DNA of 64,000 bases. It comes from Histomonas meleagridis 2922-C6/04-290x (lineage: Eukaryota; Protista; Parabasalia). Of this stretch, positions 1,414 through 12,210 are shown in pieces (the first letter of the stretch is position 1; each line of letters begins with the position of its first letter). The notes under the pieces were generated by a model. It searched no databases, was not told where the DNA came from, and saw only the letters and a program-made list of their open reading frames with translations. The stretch spans positions 434,001-498,000 of the forward strand of contig JAANOX010000278.1 of the NCBI GenBank assembly GCA_020184695.1, given 5' to 3'. The position numbers and the translations under genes were made by a program.

Positions 1414-3108
1414 ATGGATGGACAAAACCCTCAAGGGCAGTATTATACCCCAACTCAACCAGTATACACGCAACCTTATGGATACGAACAACCAGTAGTT
1501 GATGCTGGTAATCCGTATGCTCAAGTAAATCCCGATCCAAATCAAGCGAATTACCAATACCAACAAAATTACCAATACCAACAAAATTACCAATATCAAC
1601 CTAATCCATATCACTATCAACCACAAACGGGAAATTATCAATATGATTCCGAAAACATTAATTATCAAGATCTTCAAGTTGAACAATTCTCTTCCATTCC
1701 ATGTGATCAAACTTCATATTCTTGTTATTGGGAAAACCCACAAGCATTTGAACCTCAAACATATTCACAAAATACCAAAAAAGAAACCAAATGCAATGAT
1801 ATTTTATATCTTATAGTCTTCTTAATCAACTTAGTTATTACCATAGTTGTCTTTATTTGGCTTGTATCGAAGAAAGCTCCAACTGAATCAGAACCTACAA
1901 ATGAAGAACCAAGTGACGTTGACAACTTCAAGAGCCTACTTTGGAAATCCATTGGCATTAGCTTTGTTATCGGCCTTGTACTTAATATTATTCATGTTAT
2001 TTATATTGCAGCCATTCCAGTTATTTATATCAAATTTGGGTTTTTCATAGGCGTTGTGATTAGCATCATATACATTATCTATCCAATGATTCATTACACA
2101 TTATATTGGTTCTTATGTTTTCCCGGAATATTATTACTTATATCACTTCTTATGTTTTGTATCTATCGCGAATATATACCATTTTCTGCCGCATGTCTTC
2201 GACAATCCATCAAAATCATACTTCGAAATCCATCTATTTTAGTCATCATAATCATTGAAACTATATTAGATTTAGTCATCTGTGGAATCTTTTCATTAAT
2301 GATATATTATATCCAATATCATAACATTAGTGATGCTCTTTACATATACTTAGTATTTTCATATTATTGGATCTCATATACATTTGGTTATGTAATGTAT
2401 TTAACAGGCGCAGGTTTAGCAGGAACTTGGTACTTCTTAAATGACACTGAATATTATCCGAAGTCACCTGTTTGGGAATCATTTAAACGCGCAGCTACGA
2501 CATCATTTGGTAGTGCGTCAGGCGCAGCTTTATGGCTTGCCATCATTGAAGCATGTCGTGCGATTATCAGATTGGATATATCTGATTCAAACTCAACAGC
2601 GCAAGTGATTCTGATCATTCTTAAAGTGATTGCACATTGTATCATATGTATAATCCAATGTTGTTTCGCGTGGATTAATAGATACGCTTTGATTTATTGC
2701 GCTTTGTTCGGCGTTCCATTTAAAGAAGGATGCAGAAGATTTATGGAGTTATCATGCAACAGATACGTAGAAGTGATTATGGAATCTTCAATGATTAGAC
2801 ATGCGCTGACATTTAATATGTTCGTGTTCGTAATAGGTGGCGCTTGTCTCGGATATCTGTTCGGACTTTTGTTGGATGATAATAATGTTGGAGCTGTGTT
2901 TTCGACATTTTTCTCCTTGTTGTTCACTTGGTCAATTTACTTGGTCTGCGATTTCCCAATTGAAACTGTAAGTGATACTTTGGTCATTTGCTTCGCTGAG
3001 GCTCCAGAAAGATTGAAGACAACAGCATCAGAGCTATATGATTCAATGAAGGATCAGTTCTCGAAGAAATTAAGGAAGAAGATCGAAAAGAGAGCAAATA
3101 AACACTGA
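1414..3108 (+). CDS. Choline transporter-like (CTL/SLC44/Pns1 family) membrane protein with Q/Y/P-rich N-terminus
   Basis: About 10 hydrophobic segments. Motifs KCND..YLI.F, GTWYF, KRAATTSFGS and WINRYALIYCALFG.PF match the CTL family. Paralog of 7333-9093. Confidence 0.85.
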   Translation: MDGQNPQGQYYTPTQPVYTQPYGYEQPVVDAGNPYAQVNPDPNQANYQYQQNYQYQQNYQYQPNPYHYQPQTGNYQYDSENINYQDLQVEQFSSIPCDQTSYSCYWENPQAFEPQTYSQNTKKETKCNDILYLIVFLINLVITIVVFIWLVSKKAPTESEPTNEEPSDVDNFKSLLWKSIGISFVIGLVLNIIHVIYIAAIPVIYIKFGFFIGVVISIIYIIYPMIHYTLYWFLCFPGILLLISLLMFCIYREYIPFSAACLRQSIKIILRNPSILVIIIIETILDLVICGIFSLMIYYIQYHNISDALYIYLVFSYYWISYTFGYVMYLTGAGLAGTWYFLNDTEYYPKSPVWESFKRAATTSFGSASGAALWLAIIEACRAIIRLDISDSNSTAQVILIILKVIAHCIICIIQCCFAWINRYALIYCALFGVPFKEGCRRFMELSCNRYVEVIMESSMIRHALTFNMFVFVIGGACLGYLFGLLLDDNNVGAVFSTFFSLLFTWSIYLVCDFPIETVSDTLVICFAEAPERLKTTASELYDSMKDQFSKKLRKKIEKRANKH

Positions 3109-3838: not shown

Positions 3839-4335
3839 AACCTTGGTACTCAGATCTAATAAATTTTATATTGTTGATAAACAAGTTTATATTTGATTAA
3901 ATTTTTATTCAAATAAACAAAATACCTCTGTCACAACAATTTTTTTAATGTATTTCCAAATGAAATTTTTAATTCGTCCTAATCTTTTTGGCAATAGATT
4001 TTTTCTTCTAATTTTCATTAATCTTGCTTATCTTAATTAAAAAAGCAGGTATAATGTTGTTGATTAAAAAGCTTATATGAAAGTTTAATGGAAAGACAAA
4101 AAAATCACATTCATTGAATATGATCAATAACATTATTAACAAAGTTTTATAATTCTATTTCTATGTTTACTATCGCACAGATATTTAATTGCTAATTTCG
4201 TTATACTTCTTGTGTATTACTTCAGTTCCAATTAGATCTTGTTGAGTTTTGCCATTTGTTCTACTCAAAAAGTTTGATTTTAAACATCAGAAAAAGTTAT
4301 TTCGTTTTTAATTTGTGAGATTTACTCTGTGAGTT

Positions 4336-5304
4336 TTACTCAAATGTTTCTGAATTCTTTTCAGAGAATATAAAACTATATGAAATTGTTCCACCATTCA
4401 CCAGAGAATCTTGTCTTTGGTTGATCGTCTTCTTCGCAGCTGAGCCTATATCGATTTCATTTGTTTCTGCAATAATAAAATCAGTTGTATTGTAGATTTG
4501 GAACTTCAACTTAGTCTTATAGCTGCTTCCAAATGAGAAGTCAGAATTCCAAGATGGACTGGGACCAGAGATTGGTGATGTTTGCTTTGAGTTATCTCCA
4601 TTTGTCACTTTGCAAGTGTACGTAACACCTGCTACACCTCCAAAGCCACTAGCACTAGCGATTCTAACCTTGAGGTAGTAAACCTTCCTGAATTTCCAAT
4701 AAAGTGAAAAGCCTAATAATGCAAGTAAAATGACAACAATAGCCCAAGAAAGGAACTTGTTGAATATAGCTCTGAGGAACATTGCCTTAGCACGGCTTTC
4801 TCCAACCTTACCTTCAACTTCAATTTCGTCAAGATTACTGTTGATGTGTTCAATATGTTGTCTATCTTGGAGTAAAGTATCTTGAGTGGCAGCTGCTGTG
4901 TTTAATGTATCATTACCAATTGCAATTGCGTTATCTAAGTTATCAATGATAGCATTACCCTTGTCAACATTTGATTGAAGTTGCCTGTTTTGTCTATAAG
5001 CTGGATCATTTGTTAAAGCTTGACGTTTTTGACGAAGTTCAGTAAACATCTTTGAATGTTGTGTATGGAATTCTCTAATTTCTTGGTCATAATAAGAACG
5101 TTCTGATTGTGGCATTGATTTTGTTTCGTTTGTCATCTTATTCAGCATTGAATCCAGTTGTACCAAATCTTGTTCAATTTTATGATCAAGTCCTTGGCGT
5201 TGATTATATGGGAGTGAATCAAGCCTTTGTAAGTCAGATTGAATCTGCTCGATAAGGCTTTCGGTTGATGTAATTTCGTCGTCTAATTTCTGGGTTATGC
5301 TCAT
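4336..5304 (-). CDS. Vti1-like Qb-SNARE with a C2-like domain C-terminal to the transmembrane helix
   Basis: N-terminal three-helix Habc-like region; SNARE heptads (TQDTLLQDRQHIEHINSNLDEI); TM FLSWAIVVILLALLGFSLYW; then a beta-rich C2-like pattern (LKVRIASA...YTCKV...TSPISGPSPSWNSDFSF...LKFQIYN). Confidence 0.85.
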   Translation of the reverse strand: MSITQKLDDEITSTESLIEQIQSDLQRLDSLPYNQRQGLDHKIEQDLVQLDSMLNKMTNETKSMPQSERSYYDQEIREFHTQHSKMFTELRQKRQALTNDPAYRQNRQLQSNVDKGNAIIDNLDNAIAIGNDTLNTAAATQDTLLQDRQHIEHINSNLDEIEVEGKVGESRAKAMFLRAIFNKFLSWAIVVILLALLGFSLYWKFRKVYYLKVRIASASGFGGVAGVTYTCKVTNGDNSKQTSPISGPSPSWNSDFSFGSSYKTKLKFQIYNTTDFIIAETNEIDIGSAAKKTINQRQDSLVNGGTISYSFIFSEKNSETFE

Positions 5305-5596
5305 CTTTTTAGAGCAGGATTGGTATTATAATACGGTTAGGTGTCAATTTTATCGGTTTGAATCAATTTTTATAACTTTTTGATAAAACATGAAAACAAT
5401 ACGCAGGTGGTCCAATTGACAAAACTTTGAGAACTTTATATGAAAAAGATAACTGATGAAAATTTTCATAATGATTCCAATTATTTGACGTTTTTAGATT
5501 AAAAATAAGAATCAAGTTTAACCAAACGCCTCAAAAACTCCTTTATTAATTTTATGTTCCATATTGAATCTCTGTCTTAATCAGATAAACATATGG

Positions 5597-6670
5597 CTAT
5601 GATGAAGAAGGTACTTCATTGAGTAGCTCTCTCAGAGATTGCTTCTTCTTTGTGACCGACCTAATTGAATCTCTCTTCTCTTTTCTTTCTTGTTTCTGCT
5701 TCATAAGTAGTTCTTGCTTTTCTCTATTTTGTCGTTCAATCAACGCAGTAAACTCTGGTGATTGCATGACCAATTCTGGTGTTACATTTGAATTCGAATT
5801 CTGAATAACAGATCCCATATCTCGCATAGATCTTGCACCATTAGCGTTCATGTTCTCAGAGATCAGAACATGTTCCCGAAGTTGGGAAAGTGTTGGTCTA
5901 TGATCAACTGGTAATAAACATGTTGTAATAAAATCTGCTATTATAGGGTCTGAGACATCAGATATAGCCTGTGGCATGATTCCCTCTAAAATGGCATTGC
6001 GTTTTGTCATTGGTGAAGAGTATTCATTATATGGTTCAACTCCTGTTGATATCTCAAGAACTGAAAGTCCGATCTGCCAAATATCGCTCTTGGGATCAGT
6101 GATTATGGACTTGACTTCAGGGGCAGATGTTTCTGGAGGAGTTCCAAATAATAACATTTCTAGATTTGGTGGTCCTAATTTAACAATTCCATCTGAACTA
6201 TCAATGTAAATGTTATTACAACAAATATCACCATGAATAAGAGGTGGATTTCTTGAATGATAATGTTCAAGACCATCAATAATTTGACTACACCAATTTC
6301 CAATTGCAGAACGTGATGGGCTATGAACAACTTCAGCAACATAGCTTCGAATTGTTTGCAAAGAAAATAATTCCGTTATATAGATAAAAACTTTTCTTGT
6401 TTTATCGATCCAGGCTCGATACAAAGCAATAAGATTAGGGTGAGAATTTGATCCAATGAAGTTCACAATCTGTATTAGGTTGTTAAAACCATTTTCTGTT
6501 GAACCTTCAATATAAATTTCATTCCATAAACAGAGAATTCCCTCGTTTTGATCAATTGCACGATATGAGACTTGGATCCCAGAGCGTACAATTACCTCTT
6601 CTCTTTTGAATCGCCCTGAGGGATCCACATTATAATCTTCCATTGTCTGACACTTTCCAAAAAGTGTCAT
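5597..6670 (-). CDS. WNK/NRBP-like kinase-fold protein, probably a pseudokinase, with C-terminal coiled coil
   Basis: LWNEI, HPNL, YITELF, WCSQIIDGLEHYHSRNPPLIHGDICCNNIYI and VKLG match the WNK/NRBP pattern. DFG is replaced by PPN and there is no Gly-rich loop. Confidence 0.8.
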   Translation of the reverse strand: MTLFGKCQTMEDYNVDPSGRFKREEVIVRSGIQVSYRAIDQNEGILCLWNEIYIEGSTENGFNNLIQIVNFIGSNSHPNLIALYRAWIDKTRKVFIYITELFSLQTIRSYVAEVVHSPSRSAIGNWCSQIIDGLEHYHSRNPPLIHGDICCNNIYIDSSDGIVKLGPPNLEMLLFGTPPETSAPEVKSIITDPKSDIWQIGLSVLEISTGVEPYNEYSSPMTKRNAILEGIMPQAISDVSDPIIADFITTCLLPVDHRPTLSQLREHVLISENMNANGARSMRDMGSVIQNSNSNVTPELVMQSPEFTALIERQNREKQELLMKQKQERKEKRDSIRSVTKKKQSLRELLNEVPSSS

Positions 6671-7332: not shown

Positions 7333-9093
7333 ATGTCTGGAAATCCTCCAGCTTCTGATCCAATGTATCAAGCAACGATACCACTTGAACAGCAAAATGC
7401 TTATTCGCAACCTTATCCACCACAACAAGGATACCCACAACAGGGTTATCCACCACAAGGCTATACTGATCCAAACATGCAACCAGCCCCACAATATGCT
7501 CCACCACCTCCTTCATATCAGCCACAAACATACACACAAGGATACGTTGATCCAAATGCACAATATCAACAAGGATATTATCAACCTAACCCATACAATT
7601 ATCAACCACAAACAGCAAACTATCATTATGATCCTAACCATATCCAATATCACGAAATGCAAGTTGAGCAATGGGCCACAATTCCATGTGATCAAACAGC
7701 TTATTCATGTTATTGGGAAAACCAACAAGCCTTTGAACCACAAAATTACTCCCAAAACGTTAAGAAAGAAACCAAATGCAACGACCTTTTCTTTGTAATA
7801 TTATTCCTCATCAATCTTATTGCCACTATTGCTGTCTTTGTTTATCTTCTTATTGCCAAAGACATATATAAAGAAACTCAAAGCACATACCGTCCATTGG
7901 AAGTATTCTTTAAAGAAAATCTTGTCAAAACTTTAGGCATAGGACTTGCGATTGGTGTTGTCATTAACATTGTCCATCTTCTTTACATGACCTTCCTTCC
8001 AGGCGTTTACATTCGTCTCGGTTTCTTTATCTGTGTAATTATTGCAGTTATTATAATTATCGTTCCATCATTTATATATGGTCTTTATGTTCTCTTTATA
8101 TATCCAGCAATCTTTTTGTTATTTGCATTGATTTGTTTATGTTGCACACGTGGCCGTATTGAATTTTCAATTGCCGTATTAAAGCAAGCATGTCTAATTT
8201 TGCTTCGTAACCCATCCATCTTCTTATACATCTTCATTGAAGCCATTTTTGACATTATTCTCAATTGCGTATTTTCATTAATGATCTTCTACATCCAATA
8301 CAAGGGCATTAACAATGCGTTATATGTCTACTTAGTCTTATCCTACTATTGGATTTCATATACCTTTGCATATGTCATCTACACAACCGCATCTGGCTTA
8401 ACGGGCACCTGGTACTTCCTTAATGACACGGAGTACATGCCCAAGTACCCCGTCTGGGCCTCTTTCAAGCGCTCCATGACCACCTCCTTCGGAAGCGAAG
8501 CGTGCGCCGCCTTTTGGCTTGCAGTTGTCCAAGCATGTCGTGCCATTATCCATCTCAATGGCAACAACAGCCAAGTTATTATTATCCTTAAGGTCATTGC
8601 GCTCTGTATCTTGTGCATTATTGAGTGCTGTCTTAAGTGGATCAATCGTTATGCATTAATCTATTGCTCATTGTTTGGCGTTCCATTCAGAGAAGGCTGC
8701 AGACGATTTATGGAATTATCATGCAACAAATTCGCTGATGTATTATTCGAAGGATCGATCATCTCGTTAAGTACAACGTTCCATTTGTTCGCATTCACAT
8801 TGGCCGGATTCTTCGCAGGTTTCGGCATTGGTTATGCGATGGATAAGGAATACAGTTACGTGTTCATATTCACCTGCGTATTCGCATTGTTCTTTACATT
8901 GGCAATATTTTTGGTAATCGACTTCCCATTCGAAGGTATGACAGACACATTGTTCATTTGCTTCGCTGAGGCACCCGAAAAATTAAAGACATCGGCGTCG
9001 GAGCTATACGAAAGAATGAAGAACTCTTTCTCTGACTCAATGAATAAGAAACTCGATAAGGAAATTAAGAAAGGAGAAAGGAGAAACCAGTGA
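7333..9093 (+). CDS. Choline transporter-like (CTL/SLC44) protein with XYPPX repeats
   Basis: QPYPPQQGYPQQGYPPQGY N-terminus; same TM layout and motifs as 1414-3108 (IPCDQT.YSCYWEN.QAFEPQ.YSQN.KKETKCND). Confidence 0.85.
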   Translation: MSGNPPASDPMYQATIPLEQQNAYSQPYPPQQGYPQQGYPPQGYTDPNMQPAPQYAPPPPSYQPQTYTQGYVDPNAQYQQGYYQPNPYNYQPQTANYHYDPNHIQYHEMQVEQWATIPCDQTAYSCYWENQQAFEPQNYSQNVKKETKCNDLFFVILFLINLIATIAVFVYLLIAKDIYKETQSTYRPLEVFFKENLVKTLGIGLAIGVVINIVHLLYMTFLPGVYIRLGFFICVIIAVIIIIVPSFIYGLYVLFIYPAIFLLFALICLCCTRGRIEFSIAVLKQACLILLRNPSIFLYIFIEAIFDIILNCVFSLMIFYIQYKGINNALYVYLVLSYYWISYTFAYVIYTTASGLTGTWYFLNDTEYMPKYPVWASFKRSMTTSFGSEACAAFWLAVVQACRAIIHLNGNNSQVIIILKVIALCILCIIECCLKWINRYALIYCSLFGVPFREGCRRFMELSCNKFADVLFEGSIISLSTTFHLFAFTLAGFFAGFGIGYAMDKEYSYVFIFTCVFALFFTLAIFLVIDFPFEGMTDTLFICFAEAPEKLKTSASELYERMKNSFSDSMNKKLDKEIKKGERRNQ

Positions 9094-9906: not shown

Positions 9907-10057
9907 CATAAGAGTTTTTGCTCATTTTATTTTGATGATCCGTTTCATGTTGCCACCCAAATATTTTAATAAAAATTTAATAAAATAAACAAACAAACTT
10001 TTTTTAATTTTCCAATTTTTGAATAAAACAAGGACTGAAAAAGACGTTTATTTTAAC

Positions 10058-10143
10058 AAAATCAGGTATATAATGAGGTCGTGACGATCCAGAGGACCCT
10101 AGGGGCCTCACTCCTCAGGGGGTAGGTCACCAAAGCATGATTT
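10058..10143. other. GC-rich intergenic island able to fold into a multi-branched hairpin; candidate ncRNA
   Basis: Pairings aaatca/tgattt, gtgac/gtcac, gagg/cctc and actcc/ggggt lie within AT-rich intergenic DNA. Confidence 0.3.
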
Positions 10144-10425
10144 GATATATAAACGGTCGGAAATTGTACTTTACCATTTTCTGATCAATCCATCTTAATA
10201 GGGTAATCCAATATAAAAATTCTGAATATTTTTGCGGTAAAAATTAAAAAAATAGCATTCCATTTGAAATGGATATATATATAATTTTTTTAAATAAAAT
10301 GAATATTATTTTTTGTGTGCTTAAGCCTTAAGGAGAATCTATAATTCCTTTTGAGAAACATAAAGAGCATACATAGTATATTTATTCATGGAGATAATAT
10401 TTTTATTATATTTAATAACATAAAT

Positions 10426-11712
10426 TCATTTGTGAATTGAGTGTTTTGAAACAATCTGTGGTTTTGCAACAATTGTTCTCTTGATAATTTTGTTCGGACT
10501 TCCCTGTGCTGTGAGATGCCGCATTGTTCCTGTTGCTGTGGAAAGTCTCTTTGAAGCATTTGTTGCTCGAATTGAAGATTGATTAGATGTTCTGATCGGA
10601 GCCGGGATATTTTTCTTCCTAAGCGAAGCAGTTCTTGTCAGCTTAGGTGTTGGCTTAGGCCTAGCACTAATTTCCACATTACTTTGATCTGATTTACTTT
10701 TCGAGATATGAGGCAAATTTGTTCCATTCTTCAACAAGCGAACTGTCTTTGATATGTTAAATGATGGGAAAGAATTATCTTTTTCTATGAAACTATTTGG
10801 TAACTTGAAGCTATCTTCAGATATTTCTTTTCCAAAATATCGGTCTATCATTCTGAGGCTTATCGAAAAAGTGGGACACATCGGTTGAAACTGTACTGGG
10901 GTGCCCCGAAGCCATTTGTGATTGAATGCCTCCTGTATCGTCATCCGTTTTGTGCAGTCAACCGTCATTAACCCCCGGATGAAGCTTTTGCAATCATCCG
11001 ACAAGAAACTTGGAATGACATATTCGCCTCGTTTGATTTGTGCAAAAAGTTCGGCTTGTTTTCGCTTTGTCCATGGGAGTTGACCTGTAAGCATAGCATA
11101 CAAAATGACACCAACACTCCAAACATCTGTGGTAACTCCGTTATAAGGTTTCCCAGAAATACACTCTGGTGATGCATAACAAGGAGATCCACACGGTGTG
11201 TCAACAAGCCCATTCGGTGGGATAAAACGTGAAAGTCCAAAATCTGAGAATTTCACTTGGCCTGAATTACTTAAGAGGAGATTTTCTGGTTTAATGTCTC
11301 TATGAGAAACAGACATGTTATGAATGTATTCGAGTGTTTCGAGAATTTGTCGAACAAATGGTTTTGCTTCTTCTTCTTTTAGGTGATTATGGTCAACTAT
11401 GTATTGAAATAACTCTCCGTTTGGACAAAACTCCATAATTAAATAAAAATTGTTTTGATCTTGAAGAAGTTCATATAGTTGAACGATTCCTGGATGATGC
11501 ATTTGCTGGTTAATTCTAATTTCTGTTTCAAATCTTTCATGAAGGGATTCACTATTTAAGCGTGATTTTGGGACAATTTTACATGCGTAGTATTGATGTG
11601 TTTCTTCATGATGAACAAGCTTAACAACAGAAAAAGCGCCATCACCAACAGTACCCTTTAGAGAATAAGGTCCGATTTTTCTTGGTTCAACTACTTTCAA
11701 GGCACCATTCAT
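10426..11712 (-). CDS. CAMK-group (SNF1/AMPK-like) Ser/Thr kinase
   Basis: GDGAFSVV, YACK, HRDIKPENLL, DFGLS, TPCGSPCYASPE and DVWSVG; catalytic motifs intact. Confidence 0.92.
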   Translation of the reverse strand: MNGALKVVEPRKIGPYSLKGTVGDGAFSVVKLVHHEETHQYYACKIVPKSRLNSESLHERFETEIRINQQMHHPGIVQLYELLQDQNNFYLIMEFCPNGELFQYIVDHNHLKEEEAKPFVRQILETLEYIHNMSVSHRDIKPENLLLSNSGQVKFSDFGLSRFIPPNGLVDTPCGSPCYASPECISGKPYNGVTTDVWSVGVILYAMLTGQLPWTKRKQAELFAQIKRGEYVIPSFLSDDCKSFIRGLMTVDCTKRMTIQEAFNHKWLRGTPVQFQPMCPTFSISLRMIDRYFGKEISEDSFKLPNSFIEKDNSFPSFNISKTVRLLKNGTNLPHISKSKSDQSNVEISARPKPTPKLTRTASLRKKNIPAPIRTSNQSSIRATNASKRLSTATGTMRHLTAQGSPNKIIKRTIVAKPQIVSKHSIHK

Positions 11713-12210
11713 TTGTTATTGTAAACCACAGAAAGCATGTCCAAAAAGTGCCTCGCCGATAGCGTTGTAAAAAAGAAAGAACGAAAATATTTTTGGAATT
11801 GCAACGAAATTTTATATATTTTATGAATATTTAAACCCAAAAATCAAAATAACAGTTTCTAAAACCAAAGATATTAACTCATTTCCAATAGAATCATCAA
11901 AACTTATAACATGGTACTGAATGCCGATCAAAATCCATTTAATTCGTTTTTTTTTACATTTTGATACACCATTAAATGTTTTAAGTTTTAACAAATGAAT
12001 AATCAAAAAATATTTCATTTTACACCACATCTAAATCGGCAAATCTAAAACTCAAAGATGACATCAAAATTTTCATTTTTATAAAGTGAAAACTTTTCAT
12101 TGAAAAAAATCATGGCCCTGTTCAAAAGTCCTATTGAAAAAGTCGCATTTTCACAACCAATTTTTGGCTATTTAAACGTATTTCATGTATAAAATTTTCC
12201 ACTTCAAATT

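Follow-up and report, generated by a model that had tools for sequence, protein, structure and literature searches.

SNAREs are textbook tail-anchored proteins, and models of GET/TRC40 insertion and of the fusion pore assume a transmembrane (TM) segment that ends at the lumenal surface of the membrane. The Vti1-type Qb SNAREs (mouse Vti1a and Vti1b, yeast Vti1p) stop a few residues past that segment. We describe here a gene of Histomonas meleagridis 2922-C6/04-290x, found in a 64,000 nucleotide stretch of DNA (positions 434,001 to 498,000 of contig JAANOX010000278.1, referred to below as the window), whose product is like the Vti1 proteins in its Habc domain (PF05008; 1vcs, 3onj and 2qyw), in the position, by a weak alignment, of an Asp-Arg pair and in its single TM segment, but runs on for about 118 residues past that segment into a folded domain, predicted to be a C2 domain; by definition it is not a tail-anchored protein any more. 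The gene is the minus-strand open reading frame 4336..5304, an uninterrupted frame of 322 codons that begins with ATG and is closed by TAA. The TM segment of human SNAREs usually ends no more than one residue from the lumenal phosphate plane, and their tails reach about 22 residues at most (PMC13748404), so a folded 13-kDa lumenal domain is well beyond the described range. These longest tails, those of human myobrevin (about 22 residues), VAMP7 (a curled C-terminus) and Sec20, also consist of residues past the TM segment on the non-cytosolic side (PMC13748404), but they are short, disordered or closed into a small disulfide loop, and none is an independently folding domain, unlike the Histomonas C2. 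A full-text literature search found no description of a SNARE that carries a C2, or any other folded domain, on the lumenal side.

The synaptotagmins, extended synaptotagmins (E-Syt), ferlins and MCTPs have a TM helix adjoining a C2 domain, as does the Histomonas protein, and VIA-align superimposes the Histomonas tail on the C2 domains of E-Syt, otoferlin, dysferlin and MCTP2 with Z scores of 11–12.7. The C2 domains of synaptotagmins, extended synaptotagmins, ferlins and MCTPs share the cytosol with the SNAREs and regulate them, whereas that of Histomonas is within the SNARE chain and probably on the opposite side of the bilayer. Trichomonas vaginalis is a trichomonad, a group related to Histomonas, and its single-domain C2 proteins (PDB 9zk0, 9bkw and 9bky) are among the best structural matches to the tail (Z 12.5–12.7, 14–17% identity); one of them is also the best match for the modelled tail of a relative, P0012 (see below). 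They are soluble, and 9zk0 is Ca-bound, whereas the Histomonas C2 is TM-linked and has lost its Ca ligands; a PDB sequence search detected no sequence relationship between them and the tail, and a role as donor is not supported. The C2 domain of perforin and the N-terminal C2 domains of Jagged and Delta-like proteins, both matched by the P0012 tail model, lie on the non-cytosolic side of a membrane, as is proposed here. Those proteins are secreted or type I and stand outside the fusion machinery, whereas the Histomonas C2 sits in a SNARE, and the perforin C2 is Ca-dependent (title of entry 4y1s) whereas the Histomonas C2 has no Ca ligands. Two contrasts drawn in the initial annotation of this locus need qualifying: it described the C2 domains of trafficking proteins (synaptotagmins, ferlins) as cytosolic, and extracellular C2 domains are already known in perforin and Jagged/Delta; and the contrast with "almost no lumenal residues" is softened in the clade of the Histomonas protein, whose relatives carry tails of 9–35 residues.

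The AlphaFold2 (AF2) single-sequence model of the 322-residue protein (mean predicted local distance difference test score, pLDDT, 73) contains three helices in residues 3–98, a long helix at 101–162 that includes part of the SNARE motif, a helix at 172–204 and eight beta strands in 209–315, and bears out the earlier description of Habc-like helices, a SNARE motif, a TM segment and a C2-like beta-sandwich in one open frame. The TM helix, FLSWAIVVILLALLGFSLYW (residues 184–203), is the sole stretch with a Kyte-Doolittle mean above 1.6, and outside residues 175–212 no averaging window exceeds 0.95. It lies right behind the SNARE motif, as is typical of Vti1 proteins. The 118–119 residues that follow it, 109 of them in the folded domain, compare with a distance of no more than about 30–40 residues from TM segment to C-terminus in tail-anchored proteins, which permits their post-translational insertion. 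The tail frame has no stop codons, against 4–12 in each of the five other frames, and is open in about one in 10,000 mononucleotide shuffles.

The Habc domain is well supported as Vti1-type. The Pfam V-SNARE N-terminus family PF05008 matches residues 15–93 (E = 6.1e-9, 36.7 bits against a cut-off of 25.9), the mouse Vti1a N-domain 1vcs is matched with E = 4.6e-4 by the single sequence and 1.4e-6 by a three-sequence profile, and VIA-align gives Z scores of 11–12 to the Habc domains of yeast Vti1p and mouse vti1b, values that for a helical bundle are not decisive alone. The match of the SNARE motif is weak: residues 122–182 align with 61 residues of the Vti1a motif (residues 21–81 of 2nps chain C, from the early-endosomal complex) with E = 0.1 by profile, and Pfam V-SNARE_C scores 16.5 bits, under its cut-off of 27.1. 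A SNARE motif consists of about 60 residues in heptads, and its central layer holds Q, or D in Vti1a. D147-R148 fall on the D-R of the Vti1a motif, the D of which we take to be the zero layer, and both residues are invariant across seven aligned relatives. From its sequence, with the SNARE motif itself weakly matched, the protein is thus filed as Vti1-like.

The C-terminal part folds as a C2 domain in two structure predictors, as the initial annotation had proposed. Its eight strands in the AF2 model have pLDDT values of 60–81, and all of the top 50 Foldseek matches in the PDB are C2 domains, the best being Munc13-1 C2B (E = 1.1e-6); against isolated C2 domains the TM-score normalised by target is 0.6–0.69. 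VIA-align gives Z scores of 12–13, with a root-mean-square deviation of 2.2–2.8 Å over 107–117 residues, to CAPS, otoferlin, CEP120 and Trichomonas vaginalis C2 domains, and the ESM Atlas model, an independent model of the same sequence, has a TM-score of 0.83 to C2 clusters; the AF2 and ESM models both have the eight-stranded antiparallel sandwich of the C2 fold. The case from sequence is weaker than the structural one but real. Pfam C2 (PF00168) reaches 16 bits, below its gathering score of 22 (E = 0.015, residues 229–275 only), and a PDB sequence search with the tail found no C2 match. Searched exhaustively with phmmer, 1.84 billion representatives yielded a protein with nine C2 domains (E = 4.9e-5) and one with five (E = 6.5e-4), both euglenid. 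In BLASTP several of the repeats in the nine-C2 protein align with the tail (best E = 4e-6), the core P-x-W-N-x-x-F-x-F being retained, and hhalign matches it to a profile of eight of these repeats across 99 columns, with a probability of 90% and E = 1.6e-6. Predicted structure and remote sequence similarity together identify residues 208–316 as a C2 domain. The same phmmer search found no close copy of residues 201–322 that could represent the donor of the domain; its matches were the euglenid multi-C2 proteins (Ploeotia, Entosiphon) and short ones to bacterial Ig-like or Calx-beta repeat proteins around "VTYTCKVTNG", which were set aside as spurious.

At all five positions where Asp is invariant in the C2 repeat profile, the domain has lost it: one falls in a gap, one is replaced by Gly, two by the Asn and Thr of an N-T-T sequon, and the last is lost, leaving only D275 near loop 3. 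In the hhalign alignment loop 1, shorter by six residues, has the sequence G-F-G-G-V-A-G, and N-T-T stands in place of the D-K-D of loop 3; the Ca-binding loops thus carry Gly, Phe, Val and one sequon. Both the sequon, at residues 272–274, and the absence of the usual cluster of Ca-binding Asp residues had been noticed before and are as described. The tail therefore does not belong to the Ca-dependent lipid-binding subclass of C2 domains, in which loops 1 and 3 contain about five Ca-binding Asp residues, and, because all five Asp of the binding loops are lost, its sequence predicts that it cannot act as a Ca sensor or bind Ca in the classical manner. The tail opens with an "L-x-V-x-I-x-x-A" strand straight after the TM segment, has an extra last strand beyond the one aligned to the "RQVGLKK" stretch of the C2 repeats, and aligns co-linearly over 107–109 residues with the type II C2 domains of cPLA2 (1rlw) and PKC epsilon (1gmi); on these three grounds the modelled domain is read as having type II topology. 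In type II C2 domains the strand connectivity places the N- and C-termini at the end opposite the classical binding loops.

The frame is transcribed as a single unspliced, polyadenylated mRNA. Contigs from RNA libraries of a 2023 study (X3 and X4) and a 2013 run (X5) cover it with no indel and at most one mismatch, and no joint or skipped segment was seen in the RNA contigs over the frame; these are assembled contigs, which a minor shorter isoform might escape. The contig of run X5 corresponds to 4300–5327, and a T-rich loose end before 4300 represents the poly(A) of a minus-strand mRNA, about 36 nucleotides past the stop. In trichomonads TAAA overlapping the stop codon serves as the poly(A) signal, and here a TAAA of the 3' untranslated region (UTR) overlaps the stop codon. 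A DNA contig identical to the window, possibly the window's own source, and the RNA contigs are collinear across the junction of TM segment and tail, with no stop after the TM segment. It is hardly credible, then, that a SNARE gene and an adjacent C2 frame were brought together by an error of assembly or annotation. Nothing was found in favour of this explanation, which was considered solely on the ground that the relative of highest identity stops after the TM segment: the RNA contigs of two studies (X3 and X4; X5) and the DNA contig have no indel at the junction, poly(A) is found only past the full frame, and an independent metagenomic lineage has the same junction in at least five contigs.

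That lineage is one of nine relatives, all from metagenomes or run assemblies, that were found by word-index searches with the single protein and with profiles; none of the nine is named as Trichomonas, two scans of Joint Genome Institute (JGI) metagenome contigs found no relative, and shape and feature searches of the ESM Atlas found no other SNARE+C2 cluster. The best match among AlphaFold DB clusters, A0A1J4KSN5 (207 amino acids, 35% identity; by its accession series presumably from Tritrichomonas foetus), is an ordinary short v-SNARE with no tail. The initial annotation named a stop right after the TM segment, in reads and orthologues, as a refutation, and here the outcome is divided: the reads have none, the P0012 cluster, an orthologous group, keeps a long tail at the same junction, and P0002, at 58% identity the closest relative, and P0029 stop 9 and 11 residues past the TM segment, respectively. 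Four others (P0003, P0010, P0011 and P0014) have tails of 26–35 residues that are mostly Gly/Ser/Pro/Thr-rich. Several kinds of lumenal extension thus seem common in this parabasalid family of Vti1-like SNAREs, and the SNARE-C2 combination appears confined to a narrow parabasalid lineage. We note that the four Gly/Ser/Pro/Thr-rich tails resemble mucin-type stalks, and that residues 1–76 of the 305-amino-acid P0003 call are unrelated to the family while its cluster member P0034 has 229 amino acids, so the P0003 start codon was probably called too far upstream.

The P0012 cluster has 15 members of 295–309 amino acids (and one 84-amino-acid fragment) from several human-gut metagenome samples. Its junction, L-Y-W-K-L-R-K-Q-Y-D-L-S-V, is shared with the Histomonas protein, which has L-Y-W-K-F-R-K-V-Y-Y-L-K-V (consensus L-Y-W-K-x-R-K-x-Y-x-L-x-V), and both tails contain a short G-x-x-Y-T-x-K...P-I-S-G patch. 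The P0012 tail is 103 amino acids long, beta-rich and open in about two of 10,000 shuffles; its AF2 model has eight strands, and Foldseek ranks C2 first for it (a T. vaginalis C2, E = 1e-4), though a model this poor (pLDDT 42–56) can mislead. A common origin of the two tails is suggested by position, junction and predicted strand pattern, not by alignment statistics. On the 76-kb contig L003 the P0012-type gene is a tandem pair (10001–10921 and 11039–11959) with the tail kept in both copies, and L005 has the same arrangement. The L003 copies differ at 33 codons, all within codons 1–83 (19 synonymous, 14 non-synonymous); because their DNA is identical from codon 84 to the stop, this sharp boundary inside the Habc domain points to gene conversion or partial duplication. 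The window and L003 have no synteny past the SNARE gene itself.

The 322-residue sequence is identical to that of an NCBI protein. The surfaceome of H. meleagridis (PMC9610433, Table S2) lists, in accession order, KAH0801135, an XYPPX repeat protein with ten TM segments, KAH0801142, a D-serine ammonia-lyase, and KAH0801145, CKAP5. The window holds, in order, an XYPPX choline-transporter-like gene (1414–3108), the SNARE gene, a kinase gene and a second XYPPX gene (7333–9093), and further on genes for D-serine dehydratase and a TOG protein. Because the accession-order neighbours match this gene order, the SNARE-C2 gene is very probably KAH0801133, and the two XYPPX genes are probably KAH0801132 and KAH0801135. 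In both strains the biotinylated surface fraction contained KAH0801133, with four unique peptides, and the protein is also marked present in an earlier proteome and exoproteome (PMC9610433, Table S2). This detection supports translation, and is consistent with surface exposure though unspecific for it.

The arrangement that we favour, with moderate confidence, is a working Vti1-type Qb SNARE that gained a C2 domain right behind the TM segment and so became a membrane protein of type II (N-in, C-out), the C2 serving in the lumen or on the cell surface as a Ca-independent module. We infer the lumenal or extracellular position of the C2 domain from one TM segment and a cytosolic SNARE domain: a single 20-residue segment splits the ends of the protein, and the SNARE part, which is its best conserved part, works only in the cytosol. 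Synthesis of a 183-residue N-terminal domain before the TM segment emerges favours N-in insertion of a signal anchor. A C-terminal part of 119 residues exceeds the capacity of the tail-anchor pathways. Because the N-domain precedes the TM segment and the C-terminal part is too long for those pathways, the protein should be inserted as a type II signal-anchor protein, presumably by way of the signal recognition particle (SRP) and Sec61 instead of the tail-anchor route.

Several observations weigh against this arrangement, or against a function of the domain. The net charge over 15 residues is higher on the C-terminal flank of the TM segment (+5) than on the N-terminal one (+3), and nothing marks the tail as lumenal, since it has no paired Cys (there is one Cys) and one sequon. 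The P0012 tail gives no sequence signal against the C2 profile, and its model, as said, is poor; beyond the junction the Histomonas and P0012 tails show no significant similarity (BLASTP E = 0.016, shuffle z 0.2). P0002, the closest relative by identity, is tailless, and the tree does not decide whether it has lost a tail. Variation of the tail among six gene copies on five contigs amounts to one synonymous and no non-synonymous change, which has no power for a test of selection. As for the proteomic data, gene order is the sole link between the SNARE-C2 gene and KAH0801133, Table S2 gives no peptide positions and has a visibly scrambled molecular weight column, and the surface fraction also holds many ribosomal and cytosolic proteins (PMC9610433).

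The flanking charges bear on the possibility that the C2 domain is cytosolic, as in the synaptotagmins, ferlins and MCTPs, with the hydrophobic segment inserted N-out/C-in or not spanning the bilayer at all. By the charge-difference rule alone a more positive C-terminal flank favours a cytosolic C-terminus. The isoelectric point of about 9.2 for residues 204–322 and the lack of lumenal hallmarks agree with such a placement, as does the finding that the best full-length structural look-alikes of residues 157–322 are TM-plus-C2 proteins with a cytosolic C2. We nevertheless think it improbable. The one hydrophobic segment of 20 residues is too short for a hairpin and its ends must therefore lie on opposite sides, and a SNARE motif would be useless in the lumen, yet the SNARE part is the best conserved; moreover, the 183-residue N-domain would be folded before the TM segment emerges, which on established knowledge implies N-in. 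Basic residues behind the TM segment are a family trait found also in undoubted tail-anchored relatives, and because these share them they are no argument for a cytosolic tail. The N-T-T sequon, for its part, was rejected as evidence for the lumenal side: the 204 residues that run through the TM segment have two, both cytosolic, and the 118 residues of the tail have one.

The main rival to a working lumenal module is a passenger domain, a C2 segment fused behind the TM segment in the ancestor of Histomonas and its human-gut relative, and since then tolerated, translocated, functionless and drifting, the protein being otherwise an ordinary Vti1. The divergence of the tails has indeed far outpaced that of the SNARE part (between the Histomonas and P0012 proteins the tails have about 30% identity, in a global alignment that is forced and not significant, and the SNARE part 53%), sequence no longer identifies the P0012 tail as a C2, every Ca-binding Asp is gone, the closest relatives manage with no tail and polymorphism gives no signal of constraint; the ratio of non-synonymous to synonymous substitution (dN/dS) between the two tails is of no help, as they are too diverged for a test of selection. 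Drift does not easily explain, on the other hand, why about 100–118 codons have stayed open in two lineages of AT-rich DNA in which the other frames have 4–15 stops (P about 1e-4 to 2e-4 each), why the Histomonas tail folds confidently as a complete C2 with the core P-x-W-N-x-x-F-x-F kept, and why tandem duplicates in the human-gut relative both keep the tail. We rate a passenger as doubtful. A tree of the SNARE part is a polytomy of P0001, P0002 and P0012 and does not distinguish loss of the tail in P0002 from its gain after duplication.

If the type II arrangement is correct, the Habc bundle and the SNARE motif would remain in the cytosol and, like Vti1 in other organisms, take part in the fusion of endosomes, lysosomes or phagosomes, and the basic 13-kDa C2 domain, four residues past the outer end of the TM segment, would be in the organelle lumen and, after exocytic fusion, on the cell surface. 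The type II strand order would put the N- and C-termini of the C2 near the membrane, with the three Ca/lipid-binding loops pointing away from the protein's own membrane. The domain may then serve, independently of Ca, to bind or sort lipid or cargo in the lumen or ligands at the surface, which we consider its most likely function, with low confidence; the suggestion in the initial annotation that it binds cargo, lipid or host surface is speculation. In a bolder version, which we hold to be unlikely, the SNARE would also be a receptor. Displayed inside phagosomes or lysosomes and at the parasite surface, the C2 domain would bind a lipid or glycan of ingested bacteria or host cells and so link conditions within or outside the membrane to the sorting, retention or activity of the cytosolic fusion machine, and its fast evolution would result from facing the host. 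Alternatively the bulky domain would throttle the fusion pore and make the protein an inhibitory SNARE.

A natural Vti1 with a folded 13-kDa domain four residues past its TM segment would need another insertion route than the one assumed for SNAREs, and would probe how large a lumenal load a fusion SNARE can tolerate. It would also place the C2 domain, usually a cytosolic partner of SNAREs, across the bilayer from them in the same polypeptide. H. meleagridis is a poultry pathogen for which various countries have no licensed treatment (PMC9610433); if it is exposed on the surface, the lineage-specific domain of this trafficking protein could provide a marker or antigen, a modest practical point, and the narrow parabasalid range limits the general reach of the observation.

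Features of the SNARE-C2 gene (positions are those of the window, residues those of its product)
Feature	Position	Strand	Support
Full coding frame and TAA stop (stop 4336–4338)	4336..5304	-	Same in one DNA contig and RNA contigs
Vti1-type Habc three-helix bundle, residues 3–98	5011..5298	-	Pfam PF05008, 1vcs, VIA-align
Qb SNARE motif, residues 122–182; D147 at 4864–4866	4759..4941	-	Profile alignment to 2nps chain C (weak)
Single TM segment, residues 184–203	4696..4755	-	Hydrophobicity, AF2 helix, conserved with tail-anchored relatives
Basic linker K-F-R-K, TM segment to first strand	4684..4695	-	Junction common to P0012 cluster
Predicted C2 beta-sandwich, residues 208–316, type II strand order	4357..4683	-	AF2, Foldseek, VIA-align, ESM Atlas, hhalign, phmmer
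N-T-T sequon, residues 272–274, equivalent of Ca-binding loop 3	4483..4491	-	Sequence and C2-profile alignment
3' UTR to poly(A) addition site	4300..4335	-	RNA contig of run X5
Short 5' UTR; contig end is an approximate transcript start only	5305..5327	-	RNA contig end

Among the other entries of Table S2 in PMC9610433, KAH0803606, "Putative plant SNARE 11" (an NPSN-type Qb SNARE with one TM segment), is also in the surface fraction. The molecular weights in that table include other misfits, such as 12.8 kDa for RPB2 with 19 peptides and 93.6 kDa for a Rab, and the column has seemingly been sorted separately. A short product of the SNARE-C2 gene, as the 21.8 kDa given for KAH0801133 might imply, was rejected in view of this scrambling and of the exact 322-residue NCBI protein.

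The kinase gene directly upstream of the SNARE gene and on the same strand, 5597–6670 (-), encodes 357 amino acids with a Pkinase match of E = 2e-14. Its RNA contig in run X5 has its own poly(A)-like loose end at 5517, and the kinase and SNARE genes are therefore separate transcripts. The genes at 1414–3108 (+) and 7333–9093 (+) are paralogues that flank the SNARE/kinase pair, each encoding a Tyr/Pro/Gln-rich "XYPPX" N-terminus followed by a plasma-membrane choline-transporter-like domain (PF04515, E about 1e-37).

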